DNA of 64,000 bases, from the NCBI GenBank assembly GCA_002269645.1, contig NIVC01000616.1:248001-312000 (forward strand), in the 5' to 3' direction. The position numbers and the translations under genes were made by a program. The stretch is from Macrostomum lignano (taxonomy: Eukaryota). Below are positions 501 through 58,027 of the stretch, piece by piece. The notes under the pieces are model-generated. The model made no database searches. It saw nothing but the letters and a program-made list of their open reading frames with translations, and was not told the DNA's origin. The first letter of the stretch is position 1, and every line of letters begins with the position of its first letter.

Positions 501-1500
501 AGAATCGCCCCTCAGTTACCCCAGAGAATTGCCCCTCAGTTACCCTAGAGAATCGCCCCTCACCACCCCATAAGAATCGCCCCTCAGCCACCCCAAAAGA
601 ATCGCCCCTCAGCCACCCCAGAAGAATCGCTCCTCCACCACTCCATAAGAATCGCCCCTCAGCCACCCAAAAGAATCGCCCCTCAGCCACCCCAAAAGAA
701 TCGCCCCTCAGCCACCCCAGAAAAATCGCTCCTCCACCACTCCATAAGAATCGCCCCTCAGCCACCCCAAAAGAATCGCCCCTCAGCCGCTCCCTAAGAA
801 TCGCTCCTCCACCACTCCATAAGAATCGCCCCTCAGCCACTCCCTAAGAATCGCCCCTCAACCACTCCATAAGAATCGCCCCTCAGCCACTCCCTAAGAA
901 TCGCCCCTCAACCACTCCATAAGAATCGCCCCTCAGCCACTCCATCATAAGAATCGCCTCTCAGCCACCCCATAAGAATCGCCCCTCAGCCACCCCAAAA
1001 GAATCGCCCCTCAGCCACCCCACCCCATAAGAATCGCCCCTCAGCCACCCTATAAGAATCGCCCCTCAGTCACCCCATAAGAATCGCCCCTCAGCCACCC
1101 CACAAGATTCGCCCCTCAGCCAACCCATAAGAATCGCCCCTCAGCCACCCCATAAGAATCGCCCCTCAACCATGCACTCCATAAGAATCGCCCCTCAGCC
1201 ACCCCATAAGAATCGCCCCTCAGCCACCCCATGAGAATCGCCCCTCAGCCACCCCATGAGAATCGCCCCTCAGCCACTCCATCATAAGAATCGTTCTCAG
1301 CCACCCCATAAGAATCGCCCCTCAGCCACCCCACAAGAATCGCCCCTCAGCCACCCCACAAGAATCGCCCCTCAGCCACCCCATAAGAATCGCCCCTCAG
1401 CCACCCCATGAGAATCGCCCCTCAGCCACCCCATGAGAATCGCCCCTCAGCCACCCCATGAGAATCGCCCCTCAGCCACCCCATGAGAATCGCTCCTCAG
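501..1500. repeat. ~25-bp minisatellite (AAGAATCGCCCCTCAGCCACCCCAT)n
   Basis: Directly visible tandem array; a second array of the same unit lies at ~16165-16765. Confidence 0.95.
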
Positions 1501-1520
1501 CCAGCTCGCCGCCCCTGCAG

Positions 1521-3819
1521 GACCTGATCTTCCTGGGCACAGCCAGCTCGTACCCGTCGCCGCACCGCTGCGCCTCCGGCCTGATCGTCAGGTTCCATGC
1601 CGACGGCGACTGCTGGCTGTTCGACTGCGGCGAGTCTATTCAGGTGCAGCTGATGCGCTCGCCGGTGAAGCTGGGCCGAATCTCGCGCATCTTCATCACA
1701 CACCTGCACGGCGATCACAGCTTCGGCCTGCCGGGCCTTATCAGCACCCTGGGCGGCGGTCGCTGCGAGGCCGGCTCGGTGCTCACCGTGTGCGGGCCGC
1801 CCGGTACCCGGCAGTTCCTGCGGCAGAGTCTGGCTTATGCTAGAAGCGATCTGGTCGGGGTGAGGTCGGGGTGGTCCCCCGAGTCTGTACTCTGCTTCAT
1901 CTCGAAAGCAACTCTAGGCTGAGTCTCCTCTTGCCTCATCTCCTCTCTCCCCTTCTCTCTTGTCTCCTCTCTGCTCTCCTCTCTGTGATAGTTGCCACTG
2001 CGGGTGTAGAAACTTGTATGGTTTGAGGGGTTGGCTCGCAAGGCGGCTGGCTGGTGGCACTCGAGAGCGCCGCGCTGGACCACTGGGCCCTGGCCCTCGT
2101 CATTGATCCACAATCCGTTGCCTGTTTAAACACGCAGTGCTCAGACAAACTGTCGCTTAAGCAGCCGCTACAATCCTCCTCACTTTCAAAACTCTCTCCG
2201 AACTGCTCAGATTCGCCTCGCCATCCGAGAGCTCGCAGGCGTCCCCCTGCTGATGCCGGCGCCCGAGAATGCCCAGATGGAGGCCATCCTTGCCGCAGTC
2301 GCCAGTGACAGCCGCCAAGGCCTGCTGCCCGCCCTGCCCTACGAGATTGACATCGCCGATGCCGACCGACAACCCGACGGCACTTGGACTGTCGTGTCCG
2401 ACCAGGAGGCCGCTGCCGCTAGCGGCGGGGTCACAGTGCAGGCAGCCGCGCTCAGCCACCGGGTGCCCTGTGTGGGGTACAGGCTGGCCACCCGGGCTCC
2501 GGCCACCGGGCACTTGCAGCCGGAGCTGGCATACCAGCTGGGCCTGGCCAGATCTGGCGAATCTGCCCTGCTGGGCGAATTGAAGAGAGGCCGAACCGTG
2601 ACGACCCGATCTGGGGCTGTTATCAGGCCTGAGCAGGTGAGTGAGAATGGGCTTGGGTTAGGCTCTAACTTAAGTTGGAAACTAAATTCCCTTAGTTAAA
2701 GCTCTGATTCATCTGCAGTCTCTGAGACCCCCCAGTCACCTGAAGTCCCTGAATTTCCTTAGTTATTTACAGTTACAGAATCCCCAGAGTCACCTGAAGC
2801 CCCTAAATCCCTAGTCACCTGAAGCCCCTGAATCTCCAGTCACCTGAGGCCCCTGAATCCCCAGTCACCTGAGGCCCCTGAGGCCCCTGAGGCCCCTGAA
2901 TCCCAGTCACCTGAGGCCCCTGAGGCCCCTGAATCCCAGTCACCTGAGGCCCCTGAATCCCCAGTCACCTGAGGCCCCTGAATCCCCAGTCACCTGAGGC
3001 CCCTGAATCCCCAGTCACCTGAGGCCCCTGAGGCCCCTGAATCCCCAGTCACCTGAGGCCCCTGAGGCCCCTGAATCCCCAGTCACCTGAGGCCCCTGAG
3101 GCCCCTGAATCCCCAGTCACCTGAGGCCCCTGAATCCCCAGTCACCTGAAGCCCCTGATTCACCCGAAGTCCCTGAGTCGTCTGAAATCCGTGTCGCTGA
3201 GCCTACTAGCCTCGATTCGATGCGTTACCTCAGTCCAATAGTCAGTCCTTGAGTGTCTGGGTCCCTGAGTGTCTGAATCCTTGAGTGTCTGAGTCCTTGA
3301 GTGTCTGGGTCCTTGAGTGTCTGAGTCCTTGAGTCCCTGAGTCCCTGAGTCCTTGAGTCCCCGAGACCTTAAGTCCGTACCCAGTCAGCCGATCCGGAAA
3401 CCCGGGTGCCGCCGCAGGTGACAGCTGCTCCGCCCCCGCCGCTTCGCCTGGCAGTCTTCGGCGACACCTGCAACTCCGACCTGGCAGCCGACATGTGCCG
3501 CGGCGTCGACTGCGTGGTTCACGAGGCCACCGGGGACAATTCGCTGACTGACAGCTGCTTGGAGAAGGGCCACTCCACGCCCGCCATGGCTGCCCAGTTT
3601 GCCCGCCAAGTCGGTGCCAAATGCCTCCTGCTGACTCACTTCAGCCAGCGCTACACGGACGGAGCCGGGCCCACCGTCAGCGACGCCTCGGTGGAGCTGC
3701 TGCGGCGGCAGGCCGAGGCGGCCCTGGACGGTAGCGGCATCGACCTGCGGATGGCCGCCGACCTCCGGCAGTTCGCTGTCACCCACGAGGGCGTCAAGTT
3801 TGTGGCTGATCACGGCTGA
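1521..3819 (+). CDS. ELAC1: Short-form tRNase Z (RNase Z / ELAC1); exons 1521-1859, 2211-2636, 3418-3819; start Met not genomically evident
   Basis: DLIFLGTASSYPSP N-terminus, WLFDCGE, HLHGDH metallo-beta-lactamase motif, SHRVPCVGY, GDT, HEAT, HST, LTHFSQRY. Both introns are GT-AG and phase 0 (GGG|gtgagg...ctcag|ATT; CAG|gtgagt...cgcag|GTG). Confidence 0.95.
2790..3360. repeat. Intronic minisatellites (CACCTGAGGCCCCTGAATCCCCAGT-type and CTTGAGTGTCTGAGTC-type)
   Basis: Tandem arrays inside ELAC1 intron 2. Confidence 0.9.
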
Positions 3820-3959: not shown

Positions 3960-4350
3960 CCCCATTTTGGTATTCTACCTAACTTTTAATCCCCAATCTC
4001 GTAATTTTCCGTAATCCTCATTTTGAGCCTCCAATTCTCGCTAATCCTCGTTTTGGGATTCTAATTATCTCTGATCCTCATTTTGGGGTTCTAATTCTCC
4101 ATGATCCTCATTTGGGATTCTAATTCTCTCTGATCCTCATTTTGGGATTTTAATTCTTCCTAATCCTCATTTTGGGATTCTAATTCTATCTAATCCCTGT
4201 TTTGGGTTTCTAATTCTCCATAATCCTCATTTTGGGATTCTAATTCTCTCTGATCCTCATTTGGGGATTCTAATTCTCCCTAATCTTCATTTTGGGATTA
4301 TAATTCTCTCTAATCCCTGTTTTGGGATTCAACCTTCCTAATCCCCAGTC
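3960..4350. repeat. Degenerate ~40-bp tandem repeat (ATCCTCATTTTGGGATTCTAATTCTC...)
   Basis: Visible periodicity downstream of the ELAC1 stop. Confidence 0.8.
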
Positions 4351-5167: not shown

Positions 5168-5495
5168 CTCCTTACTGCTCTCTCATTGGCTGAGCTAGAT
5201 TGGGCCTGTTCCCCTTACTGCTCTCTCATTGGCTGAGCTAGATTGGGCCTGTTCCCCTTACTGCTCTCTCATTGGCTGAGCTAGATTGGGCCTGTTCCTC
5301 TTACTGCGCTCTCATTGGCTGAGCTAGATTGGGCCTGTCCCCTTACTACTTTATCATTGGCTGAGCTAGATTGGGCCTGTCCCCTTACTACTTTATCATT
5401 AGCTGAGCTAGATTAGGCCTGCCCCTGGACTGAGTTTTCGTCCGTCTGACTTTGACCTCTCTCCTTACTGCTCCCTCATTGGCTGAGCTAAATTA
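5168..5495. repeat. ~43-bp tandem repeat with ATTGG (CCAAT-box) motifs upstream of YPEL5
   Basis: About 7 units of CTTACTGCTCTCTCATTGGCTGAGCTAGATTGGGCCTGTTCCC. Confidence 0.85.
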
Positions 5496-5805
5496 GGCGG
5501 CCTGTCTCCCAAGGCTGAGTTTTCGTCGATCTTGCGGTCACTTGTGTACATCGAGTTAAATGCTTGTTGTTCATTCTTAATTCCATATACTCCTCAGGCC
5601 GTAAACCCCGAGGAAGGAAAGCAAATTTTAGCTGCCATATTAAATTTAAGTGACAGTGCGCAAACAAACTACTGAAAAATGAGTAGACGTTCTAGTTTTT
5701 CAAAAATTTAGTTATGAAAACCAGCTAAAACGTCACTAAAATTCATGCCCCGCTGGGTACTGCGCCGCTTTCAGTAAATCCCCAGAATTCAATGCTAGCT
5801 ACAGC

Positions 5806-6162
5806 ATGGGCCGCCTGCACATTGAGCACATGGGCGGCGAGCGGGTGTTCAGCTGCGCCAACTGCGACTGTCCCCTCACCAACCGGCAGCAGCTCATCAG
5901 CACCCGGTTCACCGGTGCCACCGGTAGGGCCTTCCTGTTTAACCGGGTGGTGAACCTGGACACTAGCGAGCTGCAGGACCGGGTGATGCTCACAGGCAGG
6001 CACATGGTTCGCGATGTGAGCTGCAGGAAGTGCAAGACCAAGCTGGGCTGGGTGTACGAGTTCGCCACCGAGGAGAGCCAGCAGTACAAGGAGGGCAAGA
6101 TCATCCTGGAGAGGGCGCTCATCAATGAGAGCGAAGGCTTCCCGGATCCGGTCAAGGATTAG
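5806..6162 (+). CDS. YPEL5: Yippee-like protein 5 (zinc-binding, CTLH-complex associated), single coding exon
   Basis: [20 protein letters not shown]...[20 protein letters not shown]...[34 protein letters not shown] is close to human YPEL5 as recalled. The ATG lies 1 nt after an AG acceptor. Confidence 0.97.
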
Positions 6163-6339: not shown

Positions 6340-7140
6340 GTGTCTTGAGCGCATACGTGTCTGGAACTGTCTGTGTCTTGTGCCTGTAACTGTTTCCGAG
6401 TGTCTGTAACTGTCTCGTGTGTAATTGTGTCCGAGTGCCTGTAACTGTCTGTTCTTTTTGCCTAACTGTGTCCGAGTGTCTGTAACTGTCTGTCATGTGT
6501 CTGTAATTGTCTGTCCTGTGTCTGTAACTGTGTCTTGTGTCTGTAATTGTCTGTTCTTTGTGTCTGTAACCGTGTCTAAGTGTCTGTAACTGTGTCTGAG
6601 TGTCTGTAACTGTATGTCTTCTGATTGTAACACTGTGTCTGAGTGTCTGTAACTATATGTGTCTTCTGATCGTAACTGTGTCCGAGTTTCTGTAACCGTG
6701 TCTGAGTGTCTGTAACTGTATGTGTCCTGAGTATCTGTAACTCTCTGTTCCTGTGTCTGCAACTGTGCCTCGGTGTCTGTAACTGTCTGTTCCTTGTGTC
6801 TGCAACTGTGCCTCGGTGTCTGTAACTGTCTGTTCCTGTGTCTGCAACTGTGCCTCGGTGTCTGTAACTGTCTGTTCCTTGTGTCTGCAACTGTGACTCG
6901 GTGTCTGTAACTGTCTGTTCCTTGTGTCTGCAACTGTGCCTCGGTGTCTGTAACTGTCTGTTCCTTGTGTCTGCAACTGTGCCTCGGTGTCTGTAACTGC
7001 GCCCGAGTTTCTGTAACTGTGTCTGAGTGTCTGCTCCTTGTGTCTGTAACTGTGCCTGAGTGTCTGTAGCCGTGTCTGAGTGTCTGTAACTGTCTGTGTC
7101 CTGAACGTCTGTAACTATCTGTGTCTGCCTGAGGCTGTGG
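6340..7140. repeat. Degenerate TGTCTGTAAC-based tandem repeat
   Basis: Visible periodic sequence; explains the spurious minus-strand ORFs. Confidence 0.9.
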
Positions 7141-7774: not shown

Positions 7775-9060
7775 GTAATCCCTGTTGGATAATCGGCCCT
7801 TAATCCCCTGCAAACCCTGCTGGATAATCGGCCCTTAATCCCCTGCAAACCCTGCTAGATAATCGGCCCTTAATCCCCTGTATTCCCTGCTGGATAATCG
7901 GCCCTTAATCCCCTGCAAACCCTGCTGGATAATCGGCCCTTAATCCCCTGCAAACCCTGCTAGATAATCGGCCCTTAATCCCCTGTATTCCCTGCTGGAT
8001 AATCGGCCCTTAATCCCCTGGATACCCTGCTGGATAATCGGCCCTTAATCCCCTGCAAACCCTGCTGGATAATCGGCCCTTAATCCCCTGCAAACCCTGC
8101 TAGATAATCGGCCCTTAATCCCCTGTATTCCCTGCTGGATAATCGGCCCTTAATCCCCTGGATACCCTGCTGGATAATCGGCCCTTAATCCCCTGCAAAC
8201 CCTGCTGGATAATCGGCCCTTAATCCCCTGGATTCCCTGCTGGGCTGGATAATCGGCCCTTAATCCCCTGCAAACCCTGCTAGATAATCGGCCCTTAATC
8301 CCCTGTATTCCCTGCTGGATAATCGGCCCTTAATCCCCTGGATACCCTGCTGGATAATCGGCCCTTAATCCCCTGCAAACCCTGCTGGATAATCGGCCCT
8401 TAATCCCCTGGATTCCCTGCTGGATAATCGGCCCTTAATCCCCTGCAAACCCTGCTAGATAATCTGCCCTTAATCCCCTGGATTCCCTGATGGATAATCG
8501 GCCCTTAATCCTCTAGATACCCTGCTGGATAATCGGCCCTTAATCCCTGGATTCCCTGATGGATAATTGGCTCTTAATCCCCTGGATACCCTGCTGGATA
8601 ATTGGCTCTTAATCCCCTGGATACCCTGCTGGATAATTGGCCCTTAATCCCCTCGGCCCTTAATCCCCTGCAAACCCTGCTGGATAATCGGCCCTTAATC
8701 CCCTGGATTCCCTGCTGGATAATCGGCCCTTAATCCCCTGCAAACCCTGCTAGATAATCTGCCCTTAATCCCCTGGATTCCCTGATGGATAATCGGCCCT
8801 TAATCCCCTGGATTCCCTGATGGATAATTGGCTCTTAATCCCTTGGATACCCTGCTGGATAATTGGCCCTTAATCCCCCGGATTCCCTGCTGGATAATCA
8901 GCCCTTAATCCCCTCGGCCCTTAATCCCCTGCAAACCCTGTTGGATAATCGGCCCTTAATCCCCTGGATTCCCTGCCGGATAATCGGCCCTTAATCCCCT
9001 GGATTCCCTGCCGGATAATCAGCCCTTAATCCCCTGGATACCCTGCTGGATAATTGATTG
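7775..9060. repeat. 35-bp minisatellite (GGATAATCGGCCCTTAATCCCCTGCAAACCCTGCT)n
   Basis: Period 35 (TAATCCCCTG at 7801 and 7836). Confidence 0.95.
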
Positions 9061-9213: not shown

Positions 9214-12200
9214 CGGGATGTTTCAATCTGCTGGAGACGGCGAGCTCTGGTCCTCCTACACCAGCAACGACATCGGAGCCGCAGCCTCCGCAGCAGCAGT
9301 GCGCCTACTTTGTTGCTAGGAAGCAGCGCCAGTGCCGCTTGAGACCGCTGCCCGGACAGTCGCTGTGCGTTGAGCACTGCCCTGCCGGCTCTGCCGCCCC
9401 CGGGGACAGCCGCGGTCACCGAATCCCCTGCCCCCTGGATCCCAAGCACACCGTGTACGCATCCCAGCTGGACAGGCACCTGACCCGGTGCAACTCCCGA
9501 CCCCGCCTGGTGGGCCAGCCCTTCTACCGGCAGGGCGTCAACTCTTGCGACTCGCTCGAGGATCGAACCCGCGACCTCAGCTGGAGCTTGCTGGACCCGC
9601 CGGAGCACGTGCACCGCCGGCTGGACCAGATCATCGCCCTGGTCGACTCGCTGATCCCCGACTCCGATGTTGCCGACCAGCCGGGCGACGCCGACCAGCC
9701 CATCTGGCCCATGATGGCCGCCCAGCTGAGCAATGCAGCCAGGCGGGCCGCCACTTCTTTCAAGTCCAACAAGCGGCGGATTAATAAGAAGCCGCCGGCA
9801 CAGAAGGTGCAGAGCTACTCGTCCTCCTCCTCAGATGATGATGATGAGGATGATGATGGGGAAGGCGGAGGCTTTGAGAACGGCGAGCCGAGGGCGGTGA
9901 CCAACCTGAGACAGCAGGCGAATCTCCTGGCTCTGGCTGAGAAGTCGCAGCTGCTCCGGAGTCCCTGCGCCTACGTTGAGTTTGGCGCCGGCAAAGGCCA
10001 CCTGTGCCACTGGGTGGCTCGCTACTGGTTCGAGTCCAATAGTAAGAAAGGGGAAGGTGAGCCCGCGGACAGCAACGCCTACCTGTTGATTGATCGCGGC
10101 TCGGTGAGGAACAAGCTGGACTGCGCGCACAAATATTCGGGCCAGCGATTCTCCCGGATTCGGGTAGACATTGCCGACTTGCTGCTGCGGCCGCTGCTTC
10201 TTCCGCCTGCTGAGGGTCCGATGAAAACCGCAGTTGCTGGCAGTGCGGCGTCAAGTAGAACACTTTCCACGACAGCAAAGACTTCGGTTCCCATAGCAAC
10301 CATTGAGAAGAAGCCTGTTTCCATGGAAACCAAATCGTCTGATCCGGTAGCGTCAGTTTCCATCGACACAGAAACCTCGGTTTCCATAGCAACTATTAGC
10401 AAGTCGGTTTCTATAGAAAACAAACCGTCCGATCCGATAGCGTCTGTCAACGCAAAATCCGTTGCCATAGCAACTAAAACTTCAGCTACCACAGCAACCG
10501 TTGAAAGGAAACCAGTTTCCATAGAAGCCAAGCCGTCTAATCCTATAGCGTCTGTTGACACTGTGTTTGTTTCCATGGAAACAGAAAGCTCTGTTCCCAA
10601 AGAAATCATTGAGAAGAAGCCTGTATCTGTGGAAACTGAACCGTCTGACCCTTTGGCGTTTGTCATCGCGGATTCCGTTTCCATGGAAACAGAAACCTTG
10701 GTTTCCGTAGAAACAAAACCATCTGATCCTGTATCATCTGTAGACACAGTGTCTGTTTCCATGGCAACCACTGACTCGGACCCAATAGCCTCCGCCGTTG
10801 GCAATCCTGTTTCGGAAACGCCCGCTTCTTCCAAGCAGAAAGGAGGAAAAAAGTTGGCTGCACCTGCCGTGACAACATCGGCCGCTGATGTTCGAGCGGC
10901 ATCCAGGTGCGGAGTCACGGCCCTGGGCAAGCACCTGTGCGGAGCGGCCACGGATCTGGCACTGCGGTGTCTGGCGGGACTGGACTCTGATGCAGAAGAC
11001 GGCAATAGCAGGTGATTGTCCTATTGAGCTCAGTGCATGTCGCTAAACTTCTTTGGTCACATTAGCAGTATAAAGGCTTAGGTATACTCAGCAACATCGA
11101 AAAGTCGCCACTCTGTGCGCCAGTGAGCAACTTCTATTGGAATATTCTGAAATAGAAGATACGAGAAAACTGATTGGGGTAGCTTTACTCCGTCCAACCC
11201 TCGGACACCGCTCCCCCCACTTCATTCCTCAACTGGTCTGCCGTGGCGTAGCTGAGTTGGGTCACTCGCAAAAATTGAGAAACTTCACCTGCACTCTAAA
11301 AAGTGGCAACCACAGACGGAACCACAGAACTTTTAAAACACTTCTTTCTTTTTTACCAGTGACTTTTTTGCCTTTTTAATCAGTCGAAAGGCTCAGCCTA
11401 TCGCATTCTCAAAAATTTTCTTTATTTTTCAAAGTCTAATAGTAATACTAATAATTGATTGCACCTGCTCTAATGGGCAGATGTGCAGCCGACAGCTCAG
11501 CCACAGCTATTGCGCGGCGCATCTGAAGGCTGCGTACGGCTGTTCAGTCCAATTAAGGACTGGGGGGTCGCCACACACACCCTTAATTACCCCAGCTAAT
11601 GCTGGCACCCATTTTACAGCTGGGTGAACTGAAGCAATGTAGAGGTTGCATGTCTTGCTCAAGGACACAAATTGTTCCCGAGTTGGGTCGAGAATCGAAC
11701 CCCCTTGACCTCCAAGTCGTGAGTCCGATGCTCTGACCACTGGGCTGCAACCCCTATGGTCCTTATACTTGAAGGTGTCAGTAATTTCTCATAAATTATT
11801 TCATTTTTAATTGAGGAAACATGTTGCTCCAGCCTTGCGCTGCAAAATTTGATGTTCAGCAGTGGGTCTCCCCTGACCTGAGCATGCAAGCCTGAGCAGC
11901 AAGTTGTGGTGACATAGTGACACGATGAACTTTGCTATAGGTTGCATGCACTGTAGTGTTGACTCACTAGCAGTGGAGTTGTTATTGATCGGCTTAGAGA
12001 TTGTATTTTATTCCACCCCACCCCATGCGCGCGTTTGAATCTGTCTGCACCCACCACCTCAGTGCTAAATAAACAGCCTAGCTCTCAAGCGAGCACCTTT
12101 TACTCACTCCTGCAATTCCACACTTCTGCCTCGCTTAACAAAGTTATCACAAATTATTTCATTTTTAATTGAGGAAACATGTTGCTCCAGCCTTGCGCTG

Positions 12201-14134: not shown

Positions 14135-17100
14135 ACATTGGAAATTTCGCGACTGTTCCAGGAGGGATTCGACTTTGATTTCGACGAAAATGGGGGCTCT
14201 GGCGATGATGGAAGAGGCAGCTCAAACTCCGAGCGGGATGACTACCAGCCCCGGGTGCTGACTGAAGGTGTAAGTGCATCTTTAATTTATATCCTTATGT
14301 CTCTAGATCAGCTTCTGAACAGTAGCAAGGAAAGCATGCGAAACGAATTGTTTGGCAGCGTGTTCCAATGTGATTTCGCACTGATGCGCTCGTAGTGGTA
14401 GTTTAACCGAGCTGTTGAGTAGAGATGGCCAGCTGTGGTTGCAGAATAAGAATTAACAAAACCCCTTCAGTATGTTTGTGCGTATATGTGTTCGTTTGGA
14501 CCGCTGCAAAGTGCTGTAATATCACAATTTTATGCTTGAGCTCCAATCTTAAAATTTCACACAACGCTAAGAATGTAGCCAGGGAACGAAAAAGAGTGGC
14601 CTATCTTGGCGCCTTGTCAGATAAAATGGCACTCCCTCAGATAAAATGGCACTCCCTCAGATAAAATGGCACTCCCTCAGATAAAATGGCACTCCCTCAG
14701 ATAAAATGGCGCTCTCTCAGATAAAATATCGCTCCCTCAGATAAAATGACACTCTCTCAGATAAAATGGCACTCTCTCAGATAAAATATCGCTCCCTCAG
14801 ATAAAATGACACTCTCTCAGATAAAATGGCACTCCCTCAGATAAAATGGCACTCTCTCAGATAAAATGGCGCTCCCTCAGATAAAATGGCACTCTCTCAG
14901 ATAAAATGGCGCTCCCTCAGATAAAATGGCGCTCTCTCAGATAAAGTGGCACTCCCTCAGATAAAGTGGCGCTTCTTCAGATAAAGTGGCGCTCCCTCAG
15001 ATAAAGTTGCGCTTTCTCAGATAAAGTGGCGCTTCCTCAGATAAAGTGGCGCTTCCTCAGATAAAATAGTGCTTCTTCAGATAAAGTGGCGCTTCCTCAG
15101 ATAAAGTGGCGCTCCCTCAGATAAAGTTGCGCTTTTTCAGATAAAATGGCGCTCCCTCATATACAATGGCGCTCCTTCAGATAAAATGGCGCTCCCTCAC
15201 AAAATGGCGCCCTAAAGTGAAATGGCGCCCCTCGAATCGAGAAGCGCCCGACCCAAAAAAAGTCAGGGCCGCACCCGCATTCGCAGATTAAATCGCTATA
15301 AATAACAGTGCCGCCAGATTGCCTGAATTTCGGCTACCCTCGGCTCCCCTACTCAACTCAGTGGTTCCGCGACTCCGATCAGCCGCAGCGCGATGACGAC
15401 CAGCGGCTGCTCGAGCTGAAGCTGCGCGCGGATCTGCTGTACTTCGAGGCGCGGTACGACAATGCGCTGGAAGACTATTTGACCGCGTTGGGTGCGTGCC
15501 GATGGGGATCTGAGAATCTGAGACAGAGCTGAGCACTGTCTTCTGTCCTCTTGTCTTCGTGTCTTCTTCGCCCTTATGAGCCCTACCCGACATCTGAAGA
15601 ATCCATGAATGTTCTGAAGAATCTCTGAATGTCCTGAAGAATCTCTGAATGTCCTGAAGAATCTCTGAATGTCCTGAAGAATCTCTGAATGTCCTGAAGA
15701 ATCTCTGAATGTCCTGAAGAATCTCTGAATGTCCTGAAAAATCTCTGAATATCCTGAAGAATCTCTGAATGTCCTGAAGAATCTCTGAATGTCCTAAAGA
15801 ATCTCTGAATGTCCTGAAGAATCTCTGAATGTCCTGAAGAATCTCTGAATGTCCTGAAGAATCTCTGAATATCCTGAAGAATCTCTGAATGTCCTGAAGA
15901 ATCTCTGAATGTTCTGAAGAATCTCTGAGTGTCCTGAAGAATCTCTGAATGTCCTGAAGAATCTCTGAATGTCCTGAAGAATCCATGAATGTCCTGAAGA
16001 TTGACAGCCTTCCTACACCGCCAGACCTGCTGCCCGCCAGCAACGCCATCGTGCGGCGAGACATCACCGAGGCCGTCGCCCGCTGCCAGGCCATTCTGGG
16101 TCGGGGTCAGGAGGCTCTGCAGATTGCCAGGAAGCAGGTGAGTCAGGCTAGCGTGATATCCCTATAAGTCGCCCCTTAGCCACCCCACAAGAATCGCCCC
16201 TCAGCCACCCCATCATAAGAATCGCCCCTCAGCCACCCCACAAGAATCGCCCCTCAGCCACCCCATAAGAATCGCCCCTCAGCCACCCCATAAGAATCGC
16301 CCCTCAGCCACCCCACAAGAATCGCCCCTCAGCCACCCCATAAGAATCGCCCCTCAGCCACCCCTCAAGAATCGCCCCTCAGCCAACCCATAATAAACGC
16401 CCCTCAACCACCCTTCAAGAATCGCCCCTCAGCCACCCCATAAGAATCGCCCCTCAGCCACCCCATAAGAATCGCCCCTCAGCCACCCCATGAGAATCGC
16501 CCCTCAGCCACCCTATAAAAATCGCCCCTCAGCCACCCCATAAGAATCGCCCCTTAGCCACCCCATAAAAATCGCCCCTCAGCCACCCCATAAAAATCGC
16601 CCCTCAGCCACCCCATAAAAATCGCCCCTCAGCCACCCCATAAGAATCGCCCCTCAGCCACCCCACAAGAATCGCCCCTTAGCCACCCCATAAGAATCGC
16701 CCCTCAGCCACCCCAAAAAAATCGCCCCTCAGCCACCCCATAAGAATCGCCCCTCAGCCACCTCAACCCCCTCCCCTCCATCCCAGCTGGACGAGTGCAG
16801 CACGGACGATCAGTTCATGGCCGCCTACAACCTGCTGCTGGACATCTTCCTGCAGCCGGACATCGCCGCTCAGCACTCGGACAGCCACCGGCTCGCCCTG
16901 CAGAACTGCCTGCTGCTCAACCCGCTCTGCGACCGGCTCTGGCGGCGGCTGTCGCGGATCTACGCTGAGCTGGGCCGCTCGGACAGGCGGACCACCTGTC
17001 TGCAGGCTGCTCAGTGAGTCTGGGGCTGGCTGGACCTGCTTACAGCCTCTTCTGTATTTTCCTAATTTACTGATTCATTATTGTAAACTATCGAAATTCT

Positions 17101-21354: not shown

Positions 21355-24300
21355 CCCTCAGTTTGAGCAAAGCATCTCCCAGATCCCCAGTTTGAGCAAA
21401 GCATCTCCCAAATCCAAGTTTGAGCAAAGCATCTCCCAGATCCCCAGTTTGAGTTCAAAGCATCTCCTAGATCCCCAGTTTGAGTTCAAAGCATCTCCTA
21501 GATCCTCAGTTTGAGCAAAGCATCTCCTAGATCCTCAGTTTGAGCAAAGCATCTCCCAGATCCTCAGTTTGAGCAAAGCATCTCCCAGATCCTCAGTTTG
21601 AGCAAAGCATCTCCCAGATCCTCAGTTTGAGCAAAGCATCTCCCAGATCCCCAGTTTGAGCAAAGCATCTCCTAGATCCCCAGTTTGAGCAAAGCATCTC
21701 CCAAATCCAAGTTTGAGCAAAGCATCTCCCAGATCCCCAGTTTGAGTTCAAAGCATCTCCCAAATCCAAGTTTGAGCAAAGCATCTCCCAGATCCCCAGT
21801 TTGAGTTCAAAGCATCTCCTAGATCCTCAGTTTGAGCAAAGCATCTCCCAGATCCTCAGTTTGAGCAAAGCATCTCCCAGATCCTCAGTTTGAGCAAAGC
21901 ATCTCCCAAATCCAAGTTTGAGCAAAGCATCTCCCAGATCCCCAGTTTGAGTTCAAAGCATCTCCCAAATCCAAGTTTGAGCAAAGCATCTCCCAGATCC
22001 CCAGTTTGAGTTCAAAGCATCTCCTAGATCCTCAGTTTGAGCAAAGCATCTCCCAGATCCTCAGTTTGAGCAAAGCATCTCCCAGATCCCCAGTTTGAGC
22101 AAAGCATCTCCCAAATCCAAGTTTGAGCAAAGCATCTCCCAGATCCCCAGTTTGAGTTCAAGGCATCTCCCAAATCCAAGTTTGAGCAAAGCATCTCCCA
22201 GATCCCCAGTTTGAGTTCAAAGCATCTCCTAGATCCTCAGTTTGAGCAAAGCATCTCCCAGATCCCCAGTTTGAGCAAAGCATCTCCCAAATCCAAGTTT
22301 GAGCAAAGCATCTCCCAGATCCCCAGTTTGAGTTCAAAGCATCTCCTAGATCCTCAGTTTGAGCAAAGCATCTCCTAGATCCCCAGTTTGAGCAAAGCAT
22401 CTCCCAAATCCAAGTTTGAGCAAAGCATCTCCCAGATCCCCAGTTTGAGTTCAAAGCATCTCCTAGATCCTCAGTTTGAGCAAAGCATCTCCTAGATCCC
22501 CAGTTTGAGCAAAGCATCTCCCAGATCCTCAGTTTGAGCAAAGCATCTCCCAGATCCTCAGTTTGAGCAAAGCATCTCCCAGATCCCAGTTTGAGCAAAG
22601 CATCTCCCAGATCCAGTTTGAGCAAAGCATCTCCCAGATCCCCAGTTTGAGCAAAGCATCTCCCAGATCCTCAGTTTGAGCAAAGCATCTCCCAGCATCT
22701 CCCAAATCCAAGTTTGAGCAAAGCATCTCCCAGATCCTCAGTTTGAGTTCAAAGCATCTCCCAGATCCCCAGTTTGAGCAAAGCATCTCCCAGATCCCAG
22801 TTTGAGCAAAGCATCTCCCAGATCCTCAGTTTGAGTTCAAAGCATCTCCCAGATCCTCAGTTTGAGCAAAGCATCTCCCAGATCCTCAGTTTGAGTTCAA
22901 AGCATCTCCCAGATCCTCAGTTTGAGCAAAGCATCTCCCAGATCCCCAGTTTGAGCAAAGCATCTCCCAGATCCAAGTTTGAGCAAAGCATCTCCCAGAT
23001 CCCAGTTTGAGTTCAAAGCATCTCCTAGATCCCAGTTTGAGCAAAGCATCTCCCAGATCCCAGTTTGAGCAAAGCATCTCCCAGATCCAGTTTGAGCAAA
23101 GCATCTCCCAGATCCCCAGTTTGAGCAAAGCATCTCCCAGATCCTCAGTTTGAGCAAAGCATCTCCCAGATCCCAGTTTGAGTTCAAAGCATCTCCCAGA
23201 TCCTCAGTTTGAGCAAAGCATCTCCCAGATCCCAGTTTGAGCAAAGCATCTCCCAGATCCTCAGTTTGAGCAAAGCATCTCCCAGATCCCCAGTTTGAGC
23301 AAAGCATCTCCCAGATCCTCAGTTTGAGCAAAGCATCTCCCAGATCCTCAGTTTGAGCAAAGCATCTCCCAGATCCTCAGTTTGAGTTCAAAGCATCTCC
23401 CAGATCCTCAGTTTGAGCAAAGCATCTCCCAGATCCTCAGTTTGAGCAAAGCATCTCCCAGATCCTCAGTTTGAGCAAAGCATCTCCCAGATCCTCAGTT
23501 TGAGCAAAGCATCTCCCAGATCCTCAGTTTGAGCAAAGCATCTCCCAGATCCTCAGTTTGAGCAAAGCATCTCCCAGATCCTCAGTTTGAGCAAAGCATC
23601 TCCCAGATCCTCAGTTTGAGCAAAGCATCTCCCAGATCCTCAGTTTGAGCAAAGCATCTCCCAGATCCTCAGTTTGAGCAAAGCATCTCCCAGATCCTCA
23701 GTTTGAGCAAAGCATCTCCCAGATCCTCAGTTTGAGCAAAGCATCTCCCAGATCCTCAGTTTGAGCAAAGCATCTCCCAGATCCTCAGTTTGAGCAAAGC
23801 ATCTCCCAGATCCTCAGTTTGAGCAAAGCATCTCCCAGATCCTCAGTTTGAGCAAAGCATCTCCCAGATCCCAGTTTGAGCAAGCATCTCCCAATCCAGT
23901 TTGAGCAAAGCATCTCCCAGATCCCCAGTTTGAGTTCAAAGCATCTCCCAGATCCTCAGTTTGAGCAAAGCATCTCCCAGATCCCCAGTTTGAGCAAAGC
24001 ATCTCCCAAATCCAAGTTTGAGCAAAGCATCTCCCAGATCCCAGTTTGAGTTCAAAGCATCTCCTAGATCCTCAGTTTGAGCAAAGCATCTCCCAGATCC
24101 CCAGTTTGAGCAAAGCATCTCCCAAATCCAAGTTTGAGCAAAGCATCTCCCAGATCCCCAGTTTGAGTTCAAAGCATCTCCTAGATCCTCAGTTTGAGCA
24201 AAGCATCTCCTAGATCCCCAGTTTGAGCAAAGCATCTCCCAAATCCAAGTTTGAGCAAAGCATCTCCCAGATCCTCAGTTTGAGTTCAAAGCATCTCCCA

Positions 24301-27300
24301 GATCCCCAGTTTGAGCAAAGCATCTCCCAAATCCAAGTTTGAGCAAAGCATCTCCCAGATCCCCAGTTTGAGTTCAAAGCATCTCCCAGATCCTCAGTTT
24401 GAGCAAAGCATCTCCCAGATCCTCAGTTTGAGCAAAGCATCTCCCAGATCCTCAGTTTGAGCAAAGCATCTCCCAGATCCAGTTTGAGCAAAGCATCTCC
24501 CAGATCCTCAGTTTGAGCAAAGCATCTCCCAGATCCCAGTTTGAGCAAAGCATCTCCCAGATCCCAGTTTGAGCAAAGCATCTCCCAGATCCTCAGTTTG
24601 AGCAAAGCATCTCCCAGATCCTCAGTTTGAGTAAAGCATCTCCCAGATCCCAGTTTGAGCAAAGCATCTCCTAGATCCTCAGTTTGAGCAAAGCATCTCC
24701 CAGATCCCAGTTTGAGCAAAGCATCTCCCAAATCCAGTTTGAGCAAAGCATCTCCCAGATCCCCAGTTTGAGTTCAAAGCATCTCCTAGATCCTCAGTTT
24801 GAGCAAAGCATCTCCCAGATCCCCAGTTTGAGCAAAGCATCTCCCAAATCCAAGTTTGAGCAAAGCATCTCCCAGATCCCAGTTTGAGTTCAAAGCATCT
24901 CCCAGATCCTCAGTTTGAGCAAAGCATCTCCCAGATCCTCAGTTTGAGCAAAGCATCTCCCAGATCCTCAGTTTGAGCAAAGCATCTCCCAGATCCCCAG
25001 TTTGAGCAAAGCATCTCCCAATCCAGTTTGAGCAAAGCATCTCCCAGATCCCCAGTTTGAGTTCAAAGCATCTCCCAGATCCTCAGTTTGAGCAAAGCAT
25101 CTCCCAGATCCTCAGTTTGAGCAAAGCATCTCCCAGATCCTCAGTTTGAGCAAAGCATCTCCCAGATCCTCAGTTTGAGCAAAGCATCTCCTAGATCCTC
25201 AGTTTGAGCAAAGCATCTCCCAGATCCTCAGTTTGAGCAAAGCATCTCCCAGATCCTCAGTTTGAGCAAAGCATCTCCCAGATCCTCAGTTTGAGCAAAG
25301 CATCTCCCAGATCCAGTTTGAGCAAAGCATCTCCCAGATCCCAGTTTGAGCAAAGCATCTCCCAGATCCTCAGTTTGAGCAAAGCATCTCCCAGATCCTC
25401 AGTTTGAGCAAAGCATCTCCCAGATCCTCAGTTTGAGCAAAGCATCTCCCAGATCCTCAGTTTGAGCAAAGCATCTCCCAGATCCTCAGTTTGAGCAAAG
25501 CATCTCCCAGATCCTCAGTTTGAGCAAAGCATCTCCCAGATCCTCAGTTTGAGCAAAGCATCTCCCAGATCCAGTTTGAGCAAAGCATCTCCCAGATCCC
25601 AGTTTGAGCAAAGCATCTCCCAGATCCTCAGTTTGAGCAAAGCATCTCCCAGATCCTCAGTTTGAGCAAAGCATCTCCCAGATCCCAGTTTGAGTTCAAA
25701 GCATCTCCCAGATCCTCAGTTTGAGCAAAGCATCTCCCAGATCCTCAGTTTGAGCAAAGCATCTCCCAGATCCTCAGTTTGAGCAAAGCATCTCCCAGAT
25801 CCAAGTTTGAGCAAAGCATCTCCCAGATCCTCAGTTTGAGCAAAGCATCTCCCAGATCCCAGTTTGAGCAAAGCATCTCCCAGATCCCAGTTTGAGCAAA
25901 GCATCTCCCAGATCCAGTTTGAGCAAAGCATCTCCCAGATCCTCAGTTTGAGTAAAGCATCTCCCAGATCCCCAGTTTGAGTTCAAAGCATCTCCTAGAT
26001 CCTCAGTTTGAGCAAAGCATCTCCCAGATCCCAGTTTGAGCAAAGCATCTCCCAAATCCAAGTTTGAGCAAAGCATCTCCCAGATCCCCAGTTTGAGTTC
26101 AAAGCATCTCCTAGATCCTCAGTTTGAGCAAAGCATCTCCCAGATCCCCAGTTTGAGCAAAGCATCTCCCAAATCCAAGTTTGAGCAAAGCATCTCCCAG
26201 ATCCCCAGTTTGAGTTCAAAGCATCTCCCAGATCCTCAGTTTGAGCAAAGCATCTCCCAGATCCCCAGTTTGAGTTCAAAGCATCTCCTAGATCCTCAGT
26301 TTGAGCAAAGCATCTCCCAGATCCCCAGTTTGAGCAAAGCATCTCCCAGATCCAGTTTGAGCAAAGCATCTCCCAGATCCCCAGTTTGAGTTCAAAGCAT
26401 CTCCCAGATCCTCAGTTTGAGCAAAGCATCTCCCAGATCCTCAGTTTGAGCAAAGCATCTCCCAGATCCTCAGTTTGAGCAAAGCATCTCCCAGATCCTC
26501 AGTTTGAGCAAAGCATCTCCCAGATCCTCAGTTTGAGCAAAGCATCTCCCAGATCCTCAGTTTGAGCAAAGCATCTCCCAGATCCTCAGTTTGAGCAAAG
26601 CATCTCCCAGATCCTCAGTTTGAGCAAAGCATCTCCCAGATCCTCAGTTTGAGCAAAGCATCTCCCAGATCCTCAGTTTGAGTTCAAAGCATCTCCCAGA
26701 TCCTCAGTTTGAGCAAAGCATCTCCCAGATCCTCAGTTTGAGCAAAGCATCTCCCAGATCCTCAGTTTGAGCAAAGCATCTCCCAGATCCTCAGTTTGAG
26801 CAAAGCATCTCCCAGATCCTCAGTTTGAGCAAAGCATCTCCCAGATCCTCAGTTTGAGCAAAGCATCTCCCAGATCCTCAGTTTGAGCAAAGCATCTCCT
26901 AGATCCTCAGTTTGAGCAAAGCATCTCCCAGATCCCCAGTTTGAGCAAAGCATCTCCCAGATCCTCAGTTTGAGCAAAGCATCTCCCAGATCCAAGTTTG
27001 AGCAAAGCATCTCCCAGATCCTCAGTTTGAGCAAAGCATCTCCCAGATCCCCAGTTTGAGCAAAGCATCTCCCAGATCCTCAGTTTGAGCAAAGCATCTC
27101 CCAGATCCCCAGTTTGAGCAAAGCATCTCCCAGATCCTCAGTTTGAGCAAAGCATCTCCCAGATCCCCAGTTTGAGCAAAGCATCTCCTAGATCCTCAGT
27201 TTGAGCAAAGCATCTCCCAGATCCCCAGTTTGAGCAAAGCATCTCCCAGATCCTCAGTTTGAGCAAAGCATCTCCCAGATCCTCAGTTTGAGCAAAGCAT

Positions 27301-27650
27301 CTCCCAGATCCTCAGTTTGAGCAAAGCATCTCCCAGATCCTCAGTTTGAGCAAAGCATCTCCCAGATCCTCAGTTTGAGCAAAGCATCTCCCAGATCCTC
27401 AGTTTGAGCAAAGCATCTCCCAGATCCTCAGTTTGAGCAAAGCATCTCCCAGATCCTCAGTTTGAGCAAAGCATCTCCCAGATCCTCAGTTTGAGCAAAG
27501 CATCTCCCAGATCCTCAGTTTGAGCAAGCATCTCCCAGATCCTCAGTTTGAGCAAAGCATCTCCCAGATCCTCAGTTTGAGCAAAGCATCTCCCAGATCC
27601 TCAGTTTGAGCAAAGCATCTCCCAGATCCTCAGTTTGAGCAAAGCATCGA
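21355..27650. repeat. 6.3-kb satellite, 29-bp unit (CAGTTTGAGCAAAGCATCTCCCAGATCCT) with 28-31-bp variants
   Basis: Period 29 (GATCC at 23461 and 23490). Confidence 0.98.
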
Positions 27651-27811
27651 TCCCAAATCTTCAGTTTCAGCGAAAAATAACAGGAAGAGGAGAATCCTGC
27701 ACACCAAACGCGTTGATTTTCGATTATTTTAATTTTTTTGGCAAGCAGAAGATTTCGCATCAACTACAATACAGTCATTCCTGCTCGATGTAATTTTTGG
27801 TTTCACACCTG

Positions 27812-54772: not shown

Positions 54773-54834
54773 TAATAATTTTTGATGCTTTAATTAAAAG
54801 CATCTAAGAGCATCTGGTAGCTTAGTTCAAGCTT

Positions 54835-57800
54835 AGTCCTGAACTAAGCTACCAGAATGCTGTAGTCCTAAACTAAGCTACCAGAATGCTGTAGTCCTGA
54901 ACTAAGCTACCAGAATGCTGTAGTCCTGAACTAAGCTACCAGAATGCTGTAGTCCTGAACTAAGCTACCAGAATGCTGTAGTCCTGAACTAAGCTACCAG
55001 AATGCTGTAGTCCTGAACTAAGCTACCAGAATGCTGTAGTCCTGAACTAAGCTACCAGAATGCTGTAGTCCTGAACTAAGCTACCAGAATGCTGTAGTCC
55101 TGAACTAAGCTACCAGAATGCTGTAGTCCTGAACTAAGCTACCAGAATGCTGTAGTCCTGAACTAAGCTACCAGAATGTTTTTGTCCTGAACTAAGCTAC
55201 CAGAATGCTGTAGTCCTGAACTAAGCTACCAGAATGCTGTAGTCCTGAACTAAGCTACCAGAATGCTGTAGTCCTGAACTAATCTAACAGAATGCTGTAG
55301 TCCTGAACTAAGCTACCAGAATGCTGTAGTCCTGAACTAAGCTACCAGAATGCTGTAGTCCTGAACTAAGCTACCAGAATGCTGTAGTCCTGAACTAAGC
55401 TACCAGAATGCTGTAGTCCTGAACTAAGCTACCAGAATGCTGTAGTCCTGAACTAAGCTACCAGAATGCTGTAGTCCTGAACTAAGCTACCAGAATGCTG
55501 TAGTCCTGAACTAAGCTACCAGAATGCTGTAGTCCTGAACTAAGCTACCAGAATGCTGTAGTCCTGAACTAAGCTACCAGAATGCTGTAGTCCTGAACTA
55601 ATCTACCAGAATGCTGTAGTCCTGAACTAAGCTACCAGAATGCTGTAGTCCTGAACTAAGCTACCAGAATGCTGTAGTCCTGAACTAAGCTACCAGAATG
55701 CTGTAGTCCTGAACTAAGCTACCAGAATGCTGTAGTCCTGAACTAAGCTACCAGAATGCTGTAGTCCTGAACTAAGCTACCAGAATGTTTTTGTCCTGAA
55801 CTAAGCTACCAGAATGCTGTAGTCCTGAACTAAGCTACCAGAATGCTGTAGTCCTAAACTAAGCTACCAGAATGCTGTAGTCCTGAACTAAGCTACCAGA
55901 ATGCTGTAGTCCTGAACTAAGCTACCAGAATGCTGTAGTCCTGAACTAAGCTACCAGAATGCTGTAGTCCTGAACTAAGCTACCAGAATGCTGTAGTCCT
56001 GAACTAAGCTACCAGAATGCTGTAGTCCTGAACTAAGCTACCAGAATGCTGTAGTCCTGAACTAAGCTACCAGAATGCTGTAGTCCTGAACTAAGCTACC
56101 AGAATGCTGTAGTCCTAAACTAAGCTACCAGAATGCTGTAGTCCTGAACTAAGCTACCAGAATGCTGTAGTCCTGAACTAAGCTACCAGAATGCTGTAGT
56201 CCTGAACTAAGCTACCAGAATGCTGTAGTCCTGAACTAAGCTACCAGAATGCTGTAGTCCTGAACTAAGCTACCAGAATGCTGTAGTCCTAAACTAAACT
56301 ACCAGAATGCTGTAGTCCTGAACTAAGCTACCAGAATGCTGTAGTCCTGAACTAAGCTACCAGAATGCTGTAGTCCTGAACTAAGCTACCAGAATGCTGT
56401 AGTCCTGAACTAAGCTACCAGAATGCTGTAGTCCTGAACTAAGGTACCAGAATGCTGTAGTCCTGAACTAAGCTACCAGAATGCTGTAGTCCTGAACTAA
56501 GCTACCAGAATGCTGTAGTCCTGAACTAAGCTACCAGAATGCTGTAGTCCTGAACTAAGCTACCAGAATGCTGTAGTCCTGAACTAAGCTACCAAAATGC
56601 TGTAGTCCTAAACTAAGCTACCAGAATGCTGTAGTCCTGAACTAAGCTACCAGAATGCTGTAGTCCTGAACTAAGCTACCAGAATGCTGTAGTCCTGAAC
56701 TAAGCTACCAGAATGCTGTAGTCCTGAACTAAGCTACCAGAATGCTGTAGTCCTAAACTAAGCTACCAGAATGCTGTAGTCCTGAACTAAGCTACCAGAA
56801 TGCTGTAGTCCTGAACTAAGCTACCAGAATGCTGTAGTCCTGAACTAAGCTACCAGAATGCTGTAGTCCTGAACTAAGCTACCAGAATGCTGTAGTCCTG
56901 AACTAAGCTACCAGAATGCTGTAGTCCTGAACTAAGCTACCAGAATGCTGTAGTCCTGAACTAAGCTACCAGAATGCTGTAGTCCTGAACTAAGCTACCA
57001 GAATGCTGTAGTCCTGAACTAAGCTACCAGAATGCTGTAGTCCTGAACTAAGCTACCAGAATGCTGTAGTCCTGAACTAAGCTACCAGAATGCTGTAGTC
57101 CTGAACTAAGCTACCAGAATGCTGTAGTCCTGAACTAAGCTACCAGAATGCTGTAGTCCTGAACTAAGCTACCAGAATGCTGTAGTCCTGAACTAAGCTA
57201 CCAGAATGCTGTAGTCCTGAACTAAGCTACCAGAATGCTGTAGTCCTGAACTAAGCTACCAGAATGCTGTAGTCCTGAACTAATCTACCAGAATGCTGTA
57301 GTCCTGAACTAAGCTACCAGAATGCTGTAGTCCTGAAGTAAGCTACCAGAATGCTGTAGTCCTGAACTAAGCTACCAGAATGCTGTAGTCCTGAACTAAG
57401 CTACCAGAATGCTGTAGTCCTGAACTAAGCTACCAGAATGCTGTAGTCCTGAACTAAGCTACCAGAATGCTGTAGTCCTGAACTAAGCTACCAGAATGCT
57501 GTAGTCCTGAACTAAGCTACCAGAATGCTGTAGTCCTGAACTAAGCTACCAGAATGCTGTAGTCCTGAACTAAGCTACCAGAATGCTGTAGTCCTGAACT
57601 AAGCTACCAGAATGCTGTAGTCCTGAACTAAGCTACCAGAATGCTGTAGTCCTGAACTAAGCTACCAGAATGCTGTAGTCCTGAACTAAGCTACCTGAAT
57701 GCTGTAGTCCTGAACTAAGCTACCAGAATGCTGTAGTCCTGAACTAAGCTACCAGAATGCTGTAGTCCTGAACTAAGCTACCAGAATGCTGTAGTCCTGA

Positions 57801-57983
57801 ACTAAGCTACCAGAATGCTGTAGTCCTGAACTAATCTACCAGAATGCTGTAGTCCTGAACTAAGCTACCAGAATGCTGTAGTCCTGAACTAAGCTACCAG
57901 AATGCTGTAGTCCTGAACTAAGCTACCAGAATGCTGTAGTCCTAAACTAAGCTACCAGAATGCTGTAGTCCTGAACTAAGCTA
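54835..57983. repeat. Highly homogeneous 29-bp satellite (GTCCTGAACTAAGCTACCAGAATGCTGTA)n, ~3.15 kb
   Basis: Period 29, few variants, no spacers. Confidence 0.98.
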
Positions 57984-58027
57984 CATCAAACGCAAAGTTA
58001 GTTCCAAGAGTTTGCACTCCAGGAACT

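Follow-up and report, generated by a model that had tools for sequence, protein, structure and literature searches.

How does a gene obtain an initiator codon when no ATG stands where its protein is expected to begin? The question is raised by ELAC1 of the flatworm Macrostomum lignano, which lies near the start of a 64,000-nt stretch of contig NIVC01000616.1 (assembly Mlig_3_7), here called the window, whose positions are used throughout. A first-pass annotation had proposed that the codon is supplied in trans, by the AUG that ends the flatworm spliced leader (SL). We followed up this proposal and conclude that ELAC1 probably does take its initiator codon from the SL AUG, joined at CAG (1518–1520)|G (1521). 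The case combines the anatomy of the sequence, the homology of the N-terminus, the starts of deposited gene models and the absence of any usable cis AUG from a paralogue (by read-through) and from several orthologues, with three elements taken from the literature: the SL sequence, the trans-splice acceptor motif and the use of the SL AUG as an initiator in flatworms.

We compared three genomic copies of ELAC1, on NIVC01000616.1 (locus L010), NIVC01000201.1 (L009) and NIVC01001020.1 (L001); L010 and the window agree without mismatch over the first 13.5 kb, L010 position 10001 corresponding to window 1521. The gene has three exons on the plus strand. Exon 1 (1521–1859) starts with GAC, encoding Asp at residue 2 of the inferred protein, which is also where the deposited coding sequence starts, and holds motif I (PSPHR) and HxHxDH (as HLHGDH). 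Exon 2 (2211–2637), whose junctions agree with PAA73292.1, covers the flexible-arm region and motif III, and exon 3 (3419–3819) carries the GDT, HEAT and HST motifs and the motif V His, with the stop codon TGA at 3817–3819. The introns have GTGAG donors and AG acceptors. This model gives an open frame of 388 amino acids (plus the Met) that is 99% identical to PAA73292.1, the full-length protein deposited for copy L001. The best structure match was human ELAC1 (3zwf; E = 6.9e-58, residues 2–348), and the frame also matched the RNase Z of Escherichia coli (2cbn; E = 2.3e-45) and Bacillus subtilis (1y44; E = 2e-38); its FGDT, VHEAT, GHSTP and LTHFSQRY fall on the corresponding motifs in the 3zwf and 2cbn alignments. 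Pfam models Lactamase_B_2 and Lactamase_B scored above cut-off, while the tRNase Z model Lactamase_B_4 reached 19.7 bits, under its cut-off of 27. To judge from its sequence, the gene product is a short-form RNase Z, ELAC1, with a metallo-beta-lactamase fold and all catalytic motifs in place.

The conserved frame begins at a splice acceptor. The acceptor CCCCTGCAG (1512–1520, plus strand), identical in L001 and L009, ends in CTGCAG (1515–1520), which directly abuts GAC CTG ATC TTC CTG GGC ACA from 1521 in phase 0, as the first-pass annotation had described. Upstream translation in the ELAC1 frame reads ...TP*ESPLSHPMRIAPQPPHENRSSASSPPLQ|DLIFLGT. The frame is open for 28 codons ahead of 1521, up to a TGA at 1434–1436 (plus strand), and a single ATG lies between that stop and 1521. 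It stands at 1458–1460 (plus strand), 63 nt before 1521, and would add MRIAPQPPHENRSSASSPPLQ; further ATGs at 1231, 1256, 1408, 1433 and 1483 are out of the ELAC1 frame. The claim that 1458 is the only in-frame upstream ATG and lies inside a minisatellite unit was thus confirmed, by translation of the frame and by a Tandem Repeats Finder (TRF) array at 501–1503. In the frame after 1521, no Met occurs until residue 46, which follows the conserved motif I.

In alignments, the Asp encoded at 1521 is matched by residue 2 in both human ELAC1 and B. subtilis RNase Z, and by residue 3 in the E. coli enzyme. With CTGCAG directly before that codon, the gene does lack a start codon of its own at the expected site, as had been proposed. 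We then considered where related proteins begin. Among 189 non-flatworm homologues starting with Met, the F of FLGT was at offset 4 (M-x-x-x-F) in 63 and at offset 6 in 98, so that 161 had one of these two spacings; residue 2 was E or D in 35 of the 63 with offset 4. The rule that short RNase Z proteins start M(E/D)xxFLGT is therefore roughly right. A Met placed directly before DLIFLGT puts the F at offset 4, and a start at 1458 puts it at offset 25.

The M. lignano SL has been published as CGGTCTCTTACTGCGAAGACTCAATTTATTGCATG, with a 3' end of ATG (...ATTTATTGCATG), and the motif enriched at trans-splice acceptors in this species is [T/C]TNCAG (PMC8629364). The proposal that the flatworm SL ends in AUG thus holds for M. 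lignano itself, and the CTGCAG at 1515–1520 matches the published acceptor motif. Related Macrostomum SLs likewise end in ATG, and a Macrostomum genome paper considers that the start ATG is probably contributed by the SL.

Gene models place the start of the transcript at the same site. In the Mlig_3_7 annotation, the 5' boundaries of mRNAs were cut at peaks of SL-containing reads (PMC5730564). The deposited ELAC1 coding sequences of this assembly start exactly at the acceptor (window 1521) and are flagged partial in all three copies, and RNA-guided models at six loci (three of ELAC1 and three of its paralogue) all end 5' at the acceptor. Older ML2 models keep SSPPLQ ahead of the Asp. Because the frame is open upstream, a transcript truncated at the edge of the repeat would retain SSPPLQ, as those ML2 models do. 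A coding sequence that begins at the Asp although the frame is open therefore places the 5' end of the transcript within 1519–1521.

The same arrangement recurs outside this gene. A 45%-identical ELAC1 paralogue is present in M. lignano in three copies (P0002, P0127 and P0128), and its deposited coding sequences begin at the corresponding Asp (DLVFLGT) and are flagged partial. At its start site, ttcaag|GAT, a TGA lies in frame 9 nt upstream; the nearest ATG is in another frame, and read-through meets no in-frame upstream ATG. The first-pass annotation had suggested comparing the starts of orthologues; when this was done, AG stood directly before the D/E codon in 9 of the 10 flatworm ELAC1 genes examined. 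Besides the two M. lignano genes, these were Schistosoma mansoni, S. rodhaini, Echinostoma caproni, Calicophoron daubneyi, Paragonimus heterotremus, Rodentolepis nana and a Taenia-like Logan contig. Five of these genes have no in-frame ATG before the stop, among them those of Echinostoma, Rodentolepis, Paragonimus and the Taenia-like contig. Since AG directly precedes the same codon in the paralogue and in seven other flatworm species, the CTGCAG-GAC arrangement is more than chance. The SL end, the acceptor motif, the deposited partial starts at 1521 and the paralogue all support the proposal that the initiator codon comes in trans, which we regard as likely.

In the mechanism that we propose, ELAC1 pre-mRNA would be trans-spliced to the SL at CAG (1518–1520)|G (1521). 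The RNA upstream would be an outron, and the roughly 1-kb minisatellite with its several AUGs would be discarded with it; the ATG at −63 would sit in this outron and hence be removed by trans-splicing. The 35-nt SL ending in AUG would be joined straight to GAC, giving the junction ATTTATTGCATG|GACCTGATCTTCCTGGGC (GACCTGATC on the exon side) and a mature mRNA reading ...UUGC AUG GAC CUG AUC UUC CUG GGC ACA, which would encode MDLIFLGT.... Joining the SL to exon 1 in silico gave ...UUGC AUG GAC CUG..., with one AUG, in frame, and the product MDLIFLGTASSYPSPHR... (MDLIFLGT). The predicted N-terminus MDLIFLGTASSYPSPHR, possibly acetylated, would be the canonical one for RNase Z, and the initiation site would have G at +4. 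The counterpart junction in the paralogue would be …GCATG|GATCTCGTATTC. SL reads would then be expected to map to the ELAC1 acceptor, and the ribosome to start at the SL AUG of the ELAC1 mRNA. Because the first Met after 1521 is residue 46, past motif I, the SL AUG would be the only sensible initiator in a trans-spliced mRNA.

Several points weigh against this conclusion. Trans-splicing at 1520|1521 is read from the deposited model and the fit to the motif, and annotated 5' ends are at times inexact: the start of a neighbouring yippee-type gene in L009 is 4 nt off its acceptor, and in two copies a neighbouring TRM13 gene has its annotated start at a site lacking AG. All three ELAC1 copies share the in-frame ATG at −63, with no stop between it and the acceptor. 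In the paralogue, a GTAAG situated 68 nt ahead of the acceptor closes a 22-codon frame that could be a cis mini-exon. Support from Schistosoma is also indirect: S. mansoni Smp_068090 (zinc phosphodiesterase / ribonuclease Z) is in an SL-trapping table (PMC5832876), and it is tied to the ELAC1 orthologue by product name only. In a search for transcript evidence, the 90% cluster contained no protein from Logan or from transcripts that begins MDLIFLGT, and the Schistosoma cluster none with an MELVFLGT-type start. In the parts searched of the supplements to PMC8629364, PMC5816591 and PMC5730564, the TRANSSPLICED flag was not found for ELAC1 and was seen only for neighbours such as Mlig031651.g2 (DCAF13) and Mlig034454 (TRIP13).

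We weighed the in-frame ATG at 1458 as a start in its own right. On RNA that is not trans-spliced, or that begins in the last repeat units, translation from 1458 would give a protein of 409 amino acids with the 21-residue extension MRIAPQPPHENRSSASSPPLQ, and N-terminal peptides beginning MRIAPQPPHENR... would be expected. The frame from this ATG is uninterrupted in every copy, and longer N-termini are found in a few RNase Z homologues. However, the ATG belongs to a 25-bp repeat unit (consensus AGAATCGCCCCTCAGCCACCCCATA; 501–1503, plus strand; 39.7 copies with 88% matches by TRF), some units of which carry ATG. The period, 25, is not divisible by 3, and the frame of 1458 is an accident of that period. 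The array has approximately 40 units in the window, 23 in L009 and 30 in L001, and because unit number differs among copies the minisatellite is not under coding constraint. By our estimate, an in-frame ATG ahead of the first stop is expected by chance in approximately one case in four or five. A scanning ribosome would meet the out-of-frame ATGs at 1231, 1256, 1408 and 1433 before reaching 1458, and that at 1483 after it. The 21-codon extension has one non-synonymous difference among the copies and no counterpart in the paralogue or in orthologues, and the RNA-guided deposited coding sequences leave it out despite the open frame. The last 90 nt before ELAC1 are nearly identical among the three copies, with a single substitution, in L001, so comparison of copies cannot itself reject this ATG. 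Overall we consider 1458 unlikely as the start of ELAC1, although it may serve as a minor one on RNA without trans-splicing.

The ATG, and perhaps a few residues, could instead come from an upstream exon missing from the annotation and joined in cis to the acceptor at 1520, the partial models then being 5'-truncated. A phase-0 acceptor is equally compatible with cis-splicing, cis- and trans-splicing share acceptors in parasitic flatworms, and some deposited Schistosoma and Echinostoma models have short upstream exons. Yet GT[AG]AG, the common M. lignano donor, is absent from the 3.5 kb between the stop of the upstream OSR1-type kinase gene and the acceptor in all three copies; two to three would be expected, and as few occurred in 19–48 of 500 shuffles per copy. 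Within this region ATG|GT occurs once, in the last coding exon of the kinase. The kilobase adjoining the acceptor is minisatellite, with four GT dinucleotides in all against approximately 17.6 expected. The RNA-guided models of the six loci all stop at the acceptor, and the upstream-exon N-termini predicted in other flatworms are mutually discordant. They disagree even within Schistosoma, where deposited ELAC1 N-termini read MINCVTSLFQ-, MFKSYMK-, MEF- or are truncated to an internal Met. We therefore think a hidden cis-spliced exon improbable. The 3.5-kb region before ELAC1, minisatellite included, looks like an outron.

The paralogue has a possible exon of this kind. In locus L002 (5867–5937; the same in L013), an ATG opens the 22-codon frame MKTLILGGFPNYTTDWPLTSRI, in phase with DLVFLGT and followed by the GTAAG donor mentioned above. 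It may be a cis mini-exon or chance, approximately one in five such frames being expected by chance (our estimate). Deposited models do not use it, and since two paralogue copies are 99% identical here, comparing copies is uninformative.

That the ATG is missing through loss of function in a redundant polyploid genome, in a decaying copy or one using non-AUG initiation, is very improbable: M. lignano has several ELAC1 copies plus a paralogue, and the isoform deposited for NIVC01000616.1 is non-productive, but the 388-aa frame is fully open with motifs HLHGDH, GDT, HEAT, GHST and THFSQRY, shares 99% identity with the full-length protein deposited for another copy, and has the same ATG-less start in the 45%-identical paralogue, in trematodes and in cestodes, which indicates conservation rather than decay. 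With frame and motifs intact and conserved, we rejected a pseudogene reading of ELAC1.

Donation of the start codon by the SL may extend well beyond Macrostomum. Of the flatworms examined, only the monogenean Cichlidogyrus casuarinus had its own ATG, at exactly −3 (tatagACATG|GAG; L006 2990–3010), which could have been kept from an ancestor or regained secondarily. We tentatively propose, as somewhat short of an even chance, that ELAC1 lost its own start codon before the macrostomid/neodermatan split and has depended on the SL AUG since; that in trematodes and cestodes it lies downstream of mS23 in a possible conserved polycistron; and that the Cichlidogyrus ATG is a secondary regain. If this were true, rhabditophoran flatworms as a group would depend on SL trans-splicing to express this enzyme of tRNA 3'-end processing.

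In the trematode and cestode loci fetched, ELAC1 is preceded on the same strand by an mS23 (PF10484) gene or domain, either separate or within a fused model (L003 436–904; L004 3788–8018; L005 810–5031; L007 242–4015; L008, L011 and L012). The two are fused in at least seven deposited models. The spacer between them is approximately 110 nt in the Taenia-like contig and 2.7–3.7 kb in Echinostoma and Schistosoma. The pair may be a conserved polycistron. M. lignano lacks this arrangement, the upstream gene being the OSR1-type kinase for ELAC1 and DCAF13 for the paralogue.

The 3'-terminal AUG of the S. mansoni SL was reportedly used as an initiator Met, in work by Cheng et al. in 2006. That case and ours share an SL with AUG at its end, an acceptor immediately ahead of the second codon of a conserved protein, and an in-frame SL AUG that is needed for the orthologous N-terminus; the schistosome case differs in being from a trematode rather than a free-living macrostomid and in a gene other than ELAC1, and the M. 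lignano case is read from sequence. The initiator role of the SL AUG has been restated for Echinococcus (PMC3510090), for parasitic flatworms in general and for slORFs (PMC9851317). For some Echinococcus granulosus SL-cDNAs the SL AUG is likewise required to match conserved orthologue N-termini (PMC3510090); those cases are based on sequenced SL-cDNA junctions, and M. lignano ELAC1 on genomic sequence and deposited models. The slORFs identified with slORFfinder (PMC9851317) also receive their start codon in trans from the SL, but they come from ribosome profiling of nematodes, Oikopleura and trypanosomes and are for the most part new or alternative ORFs, whereas in M. lignano the main conserved ORF is concerned. 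Human ELAC1 (3zwf) and bacterial RNase Z (1y44, 2cbn) share with the flatworm protein the short form, the metallo-beta-lactamase fold and the HxHxDH, HEAT and HST motifs, but their genes have their own ATG, directly or two codons before the D/E-x-x-F-L-G-T strand.

As the SL AUG has already been described as a flatworm initiator, ELAC1 is a further example of a known mechanism, knowledge of which it leaves unchanged. A literature search returned no paper linking Macrostomum with ELAC1 and none on Smp_068090, and ELAC1 was unmentioned in the searchable texts on SL-AUG initiation. The ATG-less ELAC1 start conserved from macrostomids to trematodes and cestodes, and the repeated mS23-ELAC1 fusion models, may both be previously unremarked. 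In flatworm annotations such genes are labelled partial, given invented N-termini or fused to the upstream gene, and recognising SL-donated start codons would correct the proteomes of M. lignano and of parasitic flatworms. ELAC1 is a clean, deeply conserved test case for how a housekeeping gene can come to depend on trans-splicing for its initiator codon, and the transgenesis tools of M. lignano allow a direct test.

We also considered whether ELAC1 belongs to an operon in M. lignano. The coding sequence of the OSR1-type kinase, on the same plus strand, ends 3.5 kb upstream of ELAC1, and AATAAA/ATTAAA signals are found at window positions −380, −301 and +400, the last not kept in L001. M. lignano operons have been delimited by a repeat-adjusted spacer of <1 kb (PMC8629364). 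By our estimate the repeat-adjusted spacer between kinase and ELAC1 is approximately 0.1–0.9 kb, depending on the poly(A) site, and could be under this threshold. The locus resembles SL-resolved M. lignano polycistrons (PMC8629364) in its same-strand upstream gene, repeat-inflated spacer and downstream trans-acceptor, and differs from them in that the operon membership of ELAC1 is only putative.

Two neighbouring genes have starts of other kinds. In the yippee-type gene (window 5770–5808; L001 ~10289, L009 ~14076), a TTTCAG acceptor at 5769–5774 is followed by an exon starting TAAATCC. Trans-splicing of the SL to this exon would place a stop straight after the start (AUG-UAA), and the gene's own ATG at 5806 gives the conserved MGRLHIEH. 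Its deposited coding sequence carries the partial flag for no other reason than that its frame runs open to the 5' end, and the gene contrasts with ELAC1 in that the SL AUG would be neutralised. In TRM13 (window 9228–9240; L010 17714, L001 13004, L009 17647), the annotated start is GAG ACG GCG (ETASSGPP...), with no ATG. The L001 copy is directly preceded by CTGCAG, a consensus trans-acceptor, while the window and L009 read CTGCTG, with no AG. TRM13 in L001 is thus a possible second SL-AUG start, and the difference between copies could mean that the acceptor has been lost in some of them, or else that the gene model was carried over from one copy to another.

The ELAC1 models deposited for the individual copies differ downstream of the start. 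The full-length 388-aa model is deposited for L001 only. The isoform deposited for NIVC01000616.1 uses an alternative exon 3 (3455–3547, plus strand; acceptor 3453–3454), in which a frame shift leads to an early stop; the coding sequence ends at 3547 and the product is a non-productive 285-aa isoform (ending ...IRPEQSSATPATPTWQ...). For L009 (10001–10402), the deposited isoform retains intron 1 and is likewise non-productive, at 133 amino acids.

A scan of the window with the SL 35-mer (≤3 mismatches) found no SL RNA gene, and neither an Rfam scan at gathering thresholds nor a tRNA scan of the window gave a hit. Minisatellites are very abundant in the window, where they occur in ELAC1 intron 2, after its stop and between genes. 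In the array upstream of ELAC1, the number of ATG-bearing ATGAGAATCG units differs greatly among copies, with six in the window, four in L009 and 23 in L001. A second array of this 25-bp unit, of approximately 24 units in the same orientation, is present at 16169–16762, which shows that the repeat is a dispersed family rather than one specific to ELAC1. Other arrays were found at 2778–3376, 4012–4330, 5170–5421, 6357–7093 and 7780–9054, and further ones at 21356–27671, 54834–57984, 58251–60552 and 61236–62903. One array spans 6.3 kb, with 217 copies of a 29-bp unit, and others extend over 2–3 kb.

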